A DNA stretch of 59,082 bases, the filler included, from Platydemus manokwari (taxonomy: Eukaryota): the NCBI GenBank assembly GCA_037951405.1. It is 5 parts of 5 records of this genome, joined end to end, with 100 filler letters (N's around TTAATTAATTAA, not from the genome) between each part and the next. Parts side by side here need not be neighbours in the genome. Positions count along the whole stretch, not along the records: positions 12,081 to 24,293 come from JBBMOY010245561.1; 4 more parts are not named here. One strand, 5' to 3'. Positions 15,301 to 21,300 of the stretch are shown in pieces. Both the position numbers and the translations under genes were made by a program. The notes below the pieces were generated by a model. The model was not told the DNA's origin. It was given only the letters and a program-made list of their open reading frames with translations, and ran no database searches. Numbering within the stretch: position 1 is the first letter of the stretch; the number at the start of each line of letters is the position of its first letter.

Positions 15301-18300
15301 GGCTAGAACAAGTGATGATTTTCCAGATCCCGTCCGCCCAACTATTCCCACCTTTTCCCGAGGATTAATTGTAAAATTTAGGTTTTTCAATATCAAATCT
15401 TGTCCTTCACGATATTTTGTTGAATAATTGATAAATTTGATCATTCCATCAGGCCACGAATCATCAGGTTTTTTATCAGCAATTTCCCATGGAGCCTAAC
15501 AAAGTAAAACGTATTCGATTTAATATCATATAAATAAATCAAACTTCAGGAGTCATATGAGAATATTCTTCAATTCTTTCCACTGATACGATGTTTGCTT
15601 CGACTTCTGAGCTCATTCTTACTAACCAATTCAAAGTTTGAGTGATGCTCAAAGCGTAACTAACTGATAGACCGACCAAACCCGCATTCAAATCAAGACC
15701 TTTATGCAAACTTAACACAGCAAATATTGCAGCAATGAAAACAATAATATTTCCAATTGTTTCTAATATTATTGCTAACCATCTAAGACAAAAAGAAAAT
15801 ATTATAAAATACAATGTTGGTTTGTTATTTTACAAAGCAGTTCATTCATTTACATTGAAAGTATAAAACGTTCAAAATGAAAACTAATCATGAATACATG
15901 TAAGTCATCATTAATAAAATCATGATAATGAAATTCTTGAAATAAACATAATTTAAAAATATTTATTAGAGTTACTTGGTCAAATACTTAATTTTAATGG
16001 ACGCGTAAACGTAATGAGTCTTGGATATATACATTTATACACACACACACATATATAGGATTGGAACAAAAGTCTTGTCCGACAGAAAATAATATTTATT
16101 TAATCAATAAAGATACGTAAATTTGTAAATATAAACAAAACATAATTAGTCTGTAAATCTAAAAAATTTCAATATTTTATGAAGAAATGAGGCACCAGTT
16201 GTGTGGAAACAATTTTGAAAAATTCCATTTCCTTCACAATAACACTCAAAATAAGGTTGCCGAGATCGGTTTTACAGTAAAAATGACGTAAAATCTATAT
16301 CTGTGTGAGTAATGTTAAGCTATGCTTTTATATTCTATTTGTAACAATACTATGTTGCAATAAAATCTTTTTACAAATTTCCACATCTGCCCTGTATAAG
16401 TCGCTACTATTTTATAACACGCGCATTGAAATCTAATTGAAAAGTCACGACATCAAATTATCTATATTTAACAACAATAATTTTAACAAAATTTATGTAC
16501 TTCGATATGAATTTATAAAACTTTTTTGATTAAAATTTTTGAACTCTCACACTCTACTTGCTTTAAATAAATAAATTCACTTTGGGGCACATAACGCGTG
16601 GGATGGGATATTTACCAGAAAATACCATTATTTAATTATGAAAAGATTTGTAATTAGATTATCTATATTTAACGAATTCAATCTATTTTTTTAATCTTCA
16701 TTCTAATAAATATTAGTATATTCATCACTGTCACTAACCAGATTTCTTTAATCAAATTTTTCAACGGTTTTGTATTTAAAAAAACAATTGAATTGTTACA
16801 ATGATTAATATACAAGTAAAAATTCTACATCATTATTTTTACTCTTGCTCACCTATTAGAAGAGATATTAGCATAATATGCATATGAATTTTTGTCAACC
16901 TTGTCTTCAGACGATTTGATAAATTTCTCGCATAACGAATATGCTCGAATACTTGAAACACCTTGCAGCGTTTCACCAAAATGCGAATAGATTGGAGATT
17001 TGGAAACTGATTCTAATCTTTTCAGCTGTCTAGATGTGGCTACATAAAACCTCTGAATGAATCAACAATATTAAACAAATCCAATCGTCAATTTTAAAAC
17101 ATGCAAGTTGATATTTATATACATTTAATATAAGACATGCACAAACACCAAATTAAAAGGTTCAATCGATATAGTTAAGAATGGGAGATCAGGAATCAAT
17201 ACTATATGTTCCCAGAATTTCATTTACAATTTTGAATACAAAATAATTTATCATTAATTTTAACAAACAAATTGTTTGTTATATTATTAGTTGTATTATT
17301 TTATTGTTTATTCTTGATCTCCCAGTTGTTAATCACTACACCTATTTAATGGTAAGCCGTTAACCTGGGTCAAAACATAGATAACAATTGTGAAAATCAT
17401 GGGAAGAATAATCCAAGGATTTGGCAATGTGACCATTATAAAGACCACAATGGATGCCAAGACTGTTATGAGAAATCCATTGATAAAATGTGGCAGCATT
17501 GTGCCTACTGAATTGAGATCACTGGAGAATCGATTGATTATTCTTCCAATGGGAATTGTGTCAAATAAGGACATTGGCGAATGGAGAACACTATGCAATA
17601 AATGCTTATGAATGTCTCTCGCTGACTTGATGGTAGCATAAGCAAACATTATAGCAGATAAGAGTTGAAACAGGGCTACAAGAAGGATAACACGTTGATA
17701 TAAATAATAAATTCTGATGAAAACTATTTTAAAAAGTTTGATTTCAAAAATTTTAGTATAATAACGGTTTTTTCCAAATTTAAAAATGAGATTTAATACA
17801 GGCATTGAAGTATTTAGTGGAGATGAGATCAAAGCATTTTTACAGTTAAAACTTAGTTACTACCAGGTGGAACTTCATTCTCTCAGATGTCTCTCTTATC
17901 TAGCTTTATCATTGACAATAATTTGTAAAACCTATTATTTAGCAATCTTCTTAATTAATTCGCCTAACGAAAATAAAACTTTTAAAAACAGAAAATGAAG
18001 CTCAGAATATATTAATACAATTATAATGCAAAGTAATCGATAATAATTCCGTAATAATGGCATGTTGTATTCAAAATTGTAAATAAAAAAAGTTGTTTTT
18101 ATTCTTCATTTAAATATACTAAATTATAAAAGAATTTTAAAAATACGGAAAATAAATCACAAAAAATAAACTTAAATTATATATTTGGTGCTTAATCAAT
18201 ACAAAGGAATTTTATCCACTAAAATTGTTTATAAGGAATGAAGTAATTGAAGAAATGAGAAACAATAGAAGAGAAATTTATTACTGATATACCTTTGAAC

Positions 18301-21300
18301 AAAAACATCGTGATAAAAAAAGTAGAAACGTTTTAAGGCCATACAGGGATATTTGTACACATTTCCTAGTTTATAAACGAACTAAATTCGTTATACTTCT
18401 TTATCGATAATATTTATCGAGACTTACATTCAGTGTTCTTGTAAAATTTATGATAATAATGATTAGTATGGTTTAGATTTGTTGATTTGATAAATTATGC
18501 TTGTAAGAGATGACGACCAAGAAGTAAAGTAAGATAGATATGAAGATTTATATATTAAAAAACCTCATAGTTTAAGATAGTTATTAAATTTTATATAATG
18601 AGTTATTCTGTCAATATGTCAGCAGCGGCTCATTATCGTATCAGTAGTGATCTAAAATAAAAAATCAATACATTTATAATCCACCAAAAATAATTATATT
18701 CGATTAAATTCAACTGAAAACCAACGAAACATTGAACGCCGACTTTGTGAAATAGATACTTGCCTTGATTATAAAATATATACAAAAGAGAGGTATCAAC
18801 ACCACTAAAAATAGTGGGATAAACACAGTAATAGCCACACCAGCTTCTATCACTCTAAGCCAACTTTGTAGAAGTGATTCGATTGCATTGGGTAAGACAT
18901 GATCCATAACTCTCATGTCCCCAGCAAATCGATTCAGTATTCGACCAACGGGATTGACATCAAAGAAAATCGGAATGGACATTCGTAAAACATTGGCCAA
19001 TAGATTATGATGTAATCTGCTGCAAACCATCATAGTGCCATAACAATAAATAAGGAGAGCGAACAGGTTCATAAGTACTGAAAGTTAAATTAATATTTAT
19101 TATGTTAATATTGTACCTAGATTTCGTATCTTAGTGTTACTGAAACTTTTACTTCATCAATGAACGAATAAGAAATCAATGAGAACGAAAATTGGAACAA
19201 AAATGTGTTAAATATGGATTTACCAAGAAAAGATTCGAAAAACCTAAAGAGGAAAGTCAATAATAGTATAAATAAGACAAGATTTTTAAGCAAGCATCAC
19301 AAAAAACCTTTTATCTGCAATATCAATCAATATTTTTTAAAATAATCATTGTTTTTATTCATTTGTTATTATTAGATAATCGTTATGCAACAAATTTCAA
19401 GATTAATCCCAATAACGTTTAGCATCAAAACGACTAAGTTTATAAATTAATAAAATAACTGATTTTATTCGAGTTTAATGGTGTATATATACCGTGCGAC
19501 TCATAAGTCTTCGTCTCTACAACTAAAATGAAACAACAAAACACAATATAATTTATACACACTTATTTATACTCATTGATATTAATTATTATTCAGTGAT
19601 TTATGTACTTTATTTCTTATTAATCAATTGCGTTATTACAATATGGTGGAAACGGCTGGTGATGTTCAATTTTCGCTTGTGGATAGTGTTTATAGTTAGC
19701 CATACAATAGTGTACAAGACTAGTGCCGAAGCTTGCGAAGAAATTTAACAACATTTCAAATGTCCAGCACCAACTTGGACAACAGTGCAATACTGGAAAC
19801 AGAAGTTTGAAGAAACTGGAAACTTATCCACTAAGTTGGGACCACGAAGACCGTCTGAGGAAAGCATGAAGGAAAAGGTGGTAAATTTTGTAAAAGAGAA
19901 TGATGGCACAAACCAACGAGAAACTTCAGAAACGCTTGATCACAGATGTCTCACTATTTTCAATTTTAGTTTTAGAGACCGAGATTTATGAATCGCACGG
20001 TATATCAATCTTCATTCTAGCTCAACATAAAAAAAACATATACATCAAATTGTCTTTGATTTGATTGGCGTGATATGATTGGTGATTTGAAAATGTGTAG
20101 ATAAAGTAGAAATTACCAATAGAAAGATCTTAATTATGGTTGTGAGAACAAAAATAATGAACAAATTACCATATACACTGAATTCAATCAAATAAACCCG
20201 TGTAACACCTTAAACGGATAAAATTTGGAACATTTCGAAAATTCCACTCAAATATCACTGGTAAATCAATTAATCACAGTGGTATGAAATATGATCATGC
20301 ATGAAACAAACACCAAAGCAGGTATACAATGTAAAAATCATCGATAGGAACACCGGAAACCTGATCTCCCAACCAGGTTACATTTAAAAACATCTATTAT
20401 GTACCTGCATCGGAATGAATATTAAGCTGGTAACCATTAAGATGACAACAAAGATCAAAATCTGTTGCCAAGACGAAGCAGACCACAACAATACAAAAAT
20501 TATGCCAATTCCATCGAGGACACATCGTACTAATCCAGAAATAGTAAAATGGATCACTAAATCGAGTTGGGCAATATCATCGCTAAATCTGGTGAGAAGT
20601 GATCCACTACTTATTCTAATAAATGTCAACAGTGGCCAATGGAATAATGCCGTTACAAATTTAATGAAGAATTCATTGCTCACTCCTAACCCTATCAAAA
20701 CAGAACTGGCTCCACACAACATATTTAGCACTCCTAATAACGCAAAGAAATGGCGACTGGAATGATATAAATCATTTACAGTATTACTGACCTTGGATGA
20801 ATCCTAAAACTCCATAAATACCAAGATTCAAATCTCGTTGACGATTGAGAAAAGTTTTGATTTCTGATATTTCGGCCTGACTGGAATTCGGATATTTAAT
20901 CAAATCGGCTAATATTTTTGAATAGTTAGCCGAAATTCTTGATTGACCAGACCATCTGACGAGCCACAGGTTGGCAACCAGATTGAAAGCTTGTGTAACA
21001 ATAAATAGTGACAATGTTATACCAGCAAGACAAAATCCAATAGACCTCAAATAGGCTATATAAACTGACCATTTCACCTGTATAAATATTAGTTTATTCA
21101 ATTAACTATATCCCTATCCTACATTTCCCTCTTTGGATGTCTCTTCTTCAATAAGTTTATCTCTTTCTCTATCTTCTTTTATTCCCATCTTTTCAAGTTC
21201 AAGTTTACAGGTCTGCTCCTTTTCGTTATTTTTCTCATCGAAAACCTATAGAAGAATATTATCAACTTTTGTGTGATTAAAGTGTATTTCAAACTATATG

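Follow-up and report, generated by a model that had tools for sequence, protein, structure and literature searches.

How are the donors of a mutually exclusive exon cluster kept silent until one exon has been chosen? Docking-site models, in which selectors beside the variable exons compete for a common dock, explain which selector wins, but they do not fully explain the silence of the other donors, or why exons that are transcribed early do not splice first. We consider this question for a stretch of DNA from Platydemus manokwari (GenBank assembly GCA_037951405.1) that is 59,082 nucleotides (nt) long in its entirety, hereafter the window, and consists of five parts of five records joined by filler. 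One of these parts, from record JBBMOY010245561.1, carries a multi-exon gene with three tandem variable exons, A, B and C. An earlier note on this DNA had proposed that the donor of each variable exon is hidden in a local hairpin next to or overlapping its selector, and that capture of the selector by the dock releases the donor by strand displacement. With donor and selector joined in one hairpin, the choice of an exon and its activation would be linked within a single RNA element. The evidence supports only two stable predicted hairpins over two weak donors, those of exons A and C, and in the folding models their coupling to docking is partial for C and absent for A.

Architecture of the exon cluster

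The best explanation of the locus, judged from its sequence, is a cluster of three tandem-duplicated exons under the presumed control of long-range RNA pairings that compete in the downstream-dock manner (Table 1). This docking architecture is of an already known kind. Exons A, B and C are paralogues: they match the same segment of the Pfam ABC_membrane profile (E 5.6e-6, 5.6e-11 and 3.3e-17, respectively) and can be aligned with one another. All three share phase 1 and have lengths of 2 mod 3, and therefore the inclusion of two of them would shift the reading frame. Paralogy, phase and length together indicate that the exons are presumably mutually exclusive. Exon A is the most divergent copy, with a 6-residue insertion and a protein identity to exon C of 19%. 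Its boundaries were read from the sequence, and its length is 2 mod 3 only if the acceptor is uuauuag|GAG, where the bar marks the splice junction. The intron that separates it from the upstream constant exon measures 58 nt (20791-20734).

When the dock region was slid along the cluster, the strongest duplexes were those with selector A (-27.2 kcal/mol) and selector C (-22.6 kcal/mol), followed by a next best site at -17.5 kcal/mol. The pairing of selector C with the dock was also recovered by an inverted-repeat scan, as repeat I7. A selector for this dock is thus found behind the donors of exons A and C, while exon B seems to pair elsewhere.

Table 1. Positions of the cluster, its predicted RNA elements and the neighbouring constant exons, counted along the window and listed in the direction of transcription after the source record.
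Feature	Position	Strand	Description
Source record piece	12081-24293		JBBMOY010245561.1; multi-exon gene on minus strand
Upstream constant exon, 3′ part	20792..21101	-	donor AAG|GUCAGU at 20792/20791
Variable exon A	20405..20733	-	329 nt; phase 1; 109 full codons; ABC transmembrane region
Extended hairpin A (predicted)	20365..20418	-	inner stem: CAG|GUACAU (20407-20399) with AUGUaACCUG (20383-20374); outer stem: exon end 20418-20409 with GUUGGGAGA
Selector A core (predicted)	20371-20360	-	UGGGAGAUCAGG; 33 nt behind donor A; 12-bp perfect complement of dock
Variable exon B	18764..19077	-	314 nt; GC donor AAG|GCAAGU
Proposed exon B stem	18673..18775	-	AU-rich; chance level
27-nt pairing, upstream arm	18062..18088	-	intron B-C; candidate selector for exon B
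Variable exon C	17365..17675	-	311 nt; best-conserved copy
Extended hairpin C (predicted)	17312..17375	-	CCCAG|GUUAA (17369-17360) with UUAACaaCUGGG (17332-17321); exon end UUUUGA with UCAAGA of selector C
Selector C core (predicted)	17324-17313	-	UGGGAGAUCAAG; 40 nt behind donor C; 10 bp with dock plus 4 more past one mismatch
27-nt pairing, downstream arm	17218..17244	-	between selector C and dock 1; candidate second dock
Docking site 1 (predicted)	17193-17182	-	CCUGAUCUCCCA; 12 nt; last intron of cluster, 130 nt upstream of constant exon acceptor
Downstream constant exon	16853..17052	-	tblastn with ABCC proteins; matches tail of P0005

Hairpins at donors A and C

All six sequence strings from which the earlier note had built its stems are present where it had placed them. 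The two principal stems, between the exon C donor CCCAGGUUAA and UUAACAACUGGG and between the exon A donor CAGGUACAU and AUGUAACCUG, are both part of the minimum free energy (MFE) folds, and they recur in all three folding windows (75, 130 and 210 nt). A further remark, that UAACCUGG is complementary to CCAGGUUA at the exon C donor, is true but trivial, because donors A and C share CAG|GU.

Both hairpins are longer than first noted. In hairpin A, an outer stem continues beyond the donor stem, in which the exon end engages GUUGGGAGA, the 5′ part of selector A, including its UGGGAGA; before docking, 7 of the 12 bases of the selector are covered and UCAGG stays unpaired. In hairpin C, the UCAAGA that pairs with the end of the exon is the 3′ end of selector C, and a small inner stem-loop lies within the hairpin. 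Each hairpin takes its 3′ arm from the sequence immediately 5′ of its selector.

The probability that donor positions -3 to +6 pair with downstream bases is 0.98 for A and 0.88 for C, which places the two donors in the top 0.7% and the top 3.2%, respectively, of the 1127 GU sites of the piece. When the 54 nt downstream were randomised with the exon end and donor held fixed, the shuffled tails matched the observed donor pairing in 0.7% (A) and 1.2% (C) of 600 trials. Folding z-scores are -2.77 for hairpin A and -4.14 for hairpin C, with none of 200 shuffles as good for C; these values come from segments cut post hoc at the hairpin ends, which flatters them. A null at the level of the sequence string finds comparable bulged stems at 0.3-0.4% of positions. 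Donor positions +3 and +4 differ between the two exons and their partners match the difference (A-U and C-G in hairpin A, U-A and A-U in hairpin C). Each of the two donors is predicted to lie under a local stem that spans -3 to +6 and costs 6-12 kcal/mol to open. Measured against these sequence nulls, the predicted hairpins exceed chance. From the models we infer that they may form in vivo and reduce the binding of U1. No Rfam family matched, and an alignment of donor regions A and C with MAFFT and RNAalifold was uninformative, the loops being of unequal length.

Nine constitutive donors of the same gene were located, giving 12 donors for comparison. The downstream pairing of the constitutive donors ranges from 0.06 to 0.86, a spread like that of the background, and donors A and C rank first and second. 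Their folding windows are also the most stable of the 12 (-17.3 kcal/mol for A and -20.6 kcal/mol for C; -6.5 to -13.1 kcal/mol for the others).

Modelled effect of docking on the hairpins

The release of the donors was modelled in three ways: the selector bases were made unavailable, the hairpins were co-folded with the dock, and a 361-nt segment from the end of exon C to the constant exon was folded as a whole. Constrained folding with and without the dock, as the earlier note had suggested, gave different outcomes for the two exons, with donor C partly opening and donor A staying shut.

For exon C, the note had held hairpin and docking to be mutually exclusive. This is correct for the outer half of the hairpin, which shares UGGG and UCAAGA with the docking helix and is displaced by it, but the GUUAA:UUAAC stem persists. 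With selector C occupied, the cost of opening positions -3 to +6 falls from 11.3 to 4.8 kcal/mol; positions -3 to -1 become free (0.05-0.08 paired), while +1 to +5 are still 0.95-0.99 paired within the GUUAA:UUAAC stem. In the 361-nt fold, selector C pairs with the dock with a probability of 0.72 and with the donor side with a probability of 0.02, and the equilibrium favours the dock by 5.8 kcal/mol.

Donor A behaves differently. Occupation of selector A leaves the opening cost practically where it was (6.1 and 6.3 kcal/mol before and after), and positions -2 to +6 remain 0.9-1.0 paired, since AUGUaACCUG, which forms the 3′ arm of the donor stem, is not part of the selector. What docking displaces is the outer stem alone, between the exon end and the selector, and the co-folded complex keeps the donor stem beside the docking helix. 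The proposal that each donor is off by default and released by dock capture therefore holds in part for C and fails for A. Opening of the donor by docking is seen only partly in C, not in A, and is absent in B, so that one donor of three would be toggle-like in silico, and that one only in part. In these models the dock would displace a metastable outer stem, and the inner donor stem would be half released in C and unreleased in A.

The sequence around selector A (20360-20380) also forms an imperfect palindrome, AACCUG...CAGGUU, through which the 3′ arm of the donor hairpin could alternatively pair with the 3′ end of the selector. A dock that holds CAGG frees ACCUG for donor A, and by this route docking would favour, not oppose, the masking of that donor.

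Explanations for the hairpins

Tentatively, we prefer to read the hairpins as functional dampers that are coupled to docking only in part. Hairpins A and C would form once 40-55 nt of the intron have been transcribed. Most likely they would serve as an inbuilt brake on two donors that are weak to begin with (GUACAU and GUUAAC), and would also cover the selector temporarily until the dock is made. They would not constitute a general switch, docking being predicted to strip the outer stem only. At exon C, docking would free positions -3 to -1 and cut the opening cost by ~6.5 kcal/mol, amounting to a partial toggle; at exon A, no part of the donor stem falls within the selector, and the stem would survive docking.

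Several points weigh against this interpretation. The hairpins were found post hoc, the apparent compensation between the paralogues is defined by the pairing itself, and the energies all come from nearest-neighbour prediction, which includes neither proteins nor kinetics. Such stems are also made likelier by a G/C-containing selector beside a CAG|GU donor where the intron is AT-rich. Two constitutive donors, c7 (0.86) and c1 (0.79), are nearly as paired as A and C. The cost of opening positions -3 to +6 is 6.8 kcal/mol for donor A compared with 6.9 kcal/mol for c7 and 6.7 kcal/mol for c1, and in the 210-nt folding windows a third constitutive donor, c3 (10.3), exceeds both A (8.6) and C (5.0). 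It is thus not clear from the models that donors A and C are buried any more deeply than some of the gene's ordinary donors. Two insect MRP clusters were examined as analogues, L001 (12453-28942) and L002 (17152-25959), from assemblies GCA_003018175.1 and GCA_029963825.1. Their ten variable donors rank at 0.12-0.88 of the local background, with no enrichment for burial. On these two insect loci, donor burial was rejected as a general property of MRP clusters.

It is quite possible, if on balance doubtful, that the hairpins are functionless by-products and that exon choice is made by dock competition, looping-out, weak donors and reading frame alone. In AT-rich intron sequence, a G/C-containing selector at a distance of 33-40 nt behind a CAG|GU donor would tend to pair with that donor and with the exon end, and exons A and C may have inherited the arrangement from one ancestral duplication unit. 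The latter would be compatible with the UAAC...CUGG that the two 3′ arms share beside the selector. Besides the constitutive donors and the insect clusters, the MFE of the A window, which is ordinary with respect to tail shuffles (z -1.1), and the lack of such a stem at exon B fit this account. It is harder to reconcile with two of three variable donors falling in the top 1-3% by two different nulls, with the low string-level frequency of such stems per position, and with the z-score of hairpin C, which no shuffle equalled. Furthermore, the stems of A and C use different bases at +3 and +4, and given the low protein identity of exons A and C, intron sequence retained since their duplication would need selection.

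A more elaborate alternative is that the hairpins are a selected kinetic device, which would lock each variable donor and its selector during transcription until the dock, transcribed up to 3.2 kb later, makes the choice. Docking would then unlock the chosen donor, fully for C, and for A with help from coaxial stacking or a helicase. We regard this as unlikely; if true, such a lock would solve the first-come, first-served problem of downstream-dock clusters by RNA alone. A full toggle, in which every variable donor is closed by default and dock capture is both necessary and sufficient to open it by strand displacement, draws on the bases shared at hairpin C, the energetic preference there for the dock and the UCAGG of free hairpin A, available as a toehold while the exon end covers the remaining selector bases, but is improbable given the persistent pairing of donor A and of positions +1 to +5 of donor C, and given exon B, which lacks a selector beside it as well as a significant stem and apparently relies on another, distant pairing.

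Exon B

For exon B, the earlier note had described a weaker stem, between UUUAUAAUC (18775-18767) and GAUUAUAAA (18681-18673), and had included this exon among those with a dock-released donor. Neither part of this withstood analysis. The stem has a z-score of -0.27, with 72 of 200 shuffles folding equally well, and it occupies exon positions -12 to -4, off the donor. Downstream pairing of donor B is 0.11 in the short folding window; 87% of GU sites are at least as paired, 98% of tail shuffles (600 trials) reach the observed value, and no local stem masks positions -3 to +6. A selector for exon B on dock 1 was sought and rejected, the best duplex in intron B-C reaching only -11.7 kcal/mol.

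A different partner for exon B is suggested by a 27-nt pairing between intron B-C and the stretch upstream of dock 1. The two arms were recovered by the inverted-repeat scan as repeat I2 and are 93% complementary. Their duplex, at -26.9 kcal/mol, compares with -17.3 +/- 2.0 kcal/mol when 40 shuffled elements are each represented by their best hit (minimum -23.2 kcal/mol). Read depth at both arms is that of single-copy sequence, and the pair is therefore not a repeat family. The helix would enclose, and loop out, exon C together with selector C. It would also draw the exon B side toward the constant acceptor and, in the model, clash topologically with the pairing of selector C and the dock. From its position and strength, the 27-nt pairing is probably the selector-dock pair of exon B, and if this is true the locus is a two-dock cluster. 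With a GC donor, a 27-nt pairing of its own and no selector beside it, exon B seems to follow a separate logic.

The GC donor (18764/18763) is otherwise consensus-like, and the boundary is backed by the reading frame and by an orthologous unit in the protein P0005 (see below).

Relation to known systems

Downstream dock/selector control of mutually exclusive exons has been reported for 14-3-3 xi, Mhc and MRP1 (Yang 2011 and Yue 2017, cited in PMC6071210). As in the systems described there, the cluster analysed here has tandem homologous MRP-type exons and a dock in the intron after the last variable exon, and the selectors just behind the donors would compete for the dock, with the pairing looping out the intervening exons. 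Unlike in those systems, only two of the three exons use this dock here and the third apparently has its own 27-nt pairing. The cluster also differs from MRP1 clusters in that the best matches to exon C are proteins named ABCC10.

Hairpins that mask a 5′ splice site are known from the exon 10 stem-loop of MAPT and from TSL2 of SMN2 exon 7 (PMC11802352). Hairpins A and C resemble these in that a short local stem covers positions -3 to +6 of a weak donor and would hinder U1. The MAPT and SMN2 hairpins act alone on cassette exons, whereas in the predicted folds here the 3′ arm abuts or overlaps the selector of a long-range docking interaction. In the 3′ variable regions of PGRP-LC (Pan et al. 2018), competing pairings activate one splice site and mask the 5′ splice site that is intron-proximal (PMC9013439). 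There the competing long-range helix is also what hides the site; here that role would fall to a separate local hairpin, whose masking docking would relieve only in part. Balancer pairings in the Dscam1 exon 6 cluster, also noted for MRP1, antagonise dock-selector pairing and mask splice sites, and have been proposed to counter the first-come, first-served bias (PMC8791459). Balancers are long-range pairs between introns that mask acceptors, whereas the pairs described here are local and join the selector to the donor or to the end of the exon.

A donor tied to its own selector by a local stem would unite these known ideas in a new variant. On the folding statistics presented here, such a variant is plausible but unproven. 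The locus itself contributes an MRP-type cluster, apparently one with two separate dock-selector pairs, from a lineage that has been poorly sampled.

The gene and its relatives

The minus-strand gene is tiled from residue ~504 to ~1523 by tblastn with the full-length ABCC proteins P0018 and P0028. Judged by its ABC transmembrane and ATP-binding domains, which are ordered as in ABCC proteins, the gene is an ABCC/MRP-type transporter. The sole sequencing run that covers the stretch is DNA of the source individual, and read mapping showed no differences in unique sequence.

An exhaustive exon-by-exon search of representative proteins yielded one close relative, P0005 (280 aa, present in UniParc only), for which no contig is recorded. 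It consists of an exon B-like unit, orthologous to exon B, an exon C-like unit that is 67% identical to exon C, and the downstream constant exon, all concatenated. The presence of both units indicates that the B/C duplication is older than the split from the P0005 lineage. Word searches returned only fragments of at most 43% identity for exon C and nothing closer than 51% for P0005, and a metagenome scan found nothing close.

The best matches to exon C in a single stretch are proteins named ABCC10 or MRP7 from salamanders, a sea urchin and a sea slug; an unnamed lamprey protein and a choanoflagellate ABCC protein also match (the set comprises P0018, P0028, P0038, P0015 and P0042). From these matches, the subfamily may be ABCC10-like rather than MRP1. 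The 721-aa protein P0008 from Entrophospora sp., an ABCC gene model of a glomeromycote fungus, matches exon C in two stretches, which hints that tandem duplicated exons may occur in a fungal ABCC gene too.

The two insect clusters each have five tandem variable exons of ~65-78 codons, compared with 103-109 codons here. Because the insect exons are shorter, the duplications in insects and in this gene are probably independent. The insect gene models P0006 and P0007 concatenate three variable exons.

Several introns of the gene are only ~50-58 nt long (at 23436, 15545 and 20791-20734, among others), and degenerate forms occur at several of its donors (GUUUGA twice, GUUUGU). The organism's DNA is AT-rich, with ~23-36% GC, and the protein collections contain no near relative of the organism.

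Mobile elements in the introns

The intron between exons A and B contains a repeat element (19487-20005) with 43-nt terminal inverted repeats that are 88% complementary and flanked by TATA. No Pfam domain was found inside it. Contig depth over the element reaches ~100,000, compared with 12-15 for unique sequence, which identifies it as a very high-copy transposon resembling a miniature inverted-repeat transposable element. Another intron of the transporter gene holds, on the opposite strand, a fragment of a DDE_1 (pogo/Tigger-type) transposase open reading frame (14341-14535, plus strand; Pfam E 5.5e-9).

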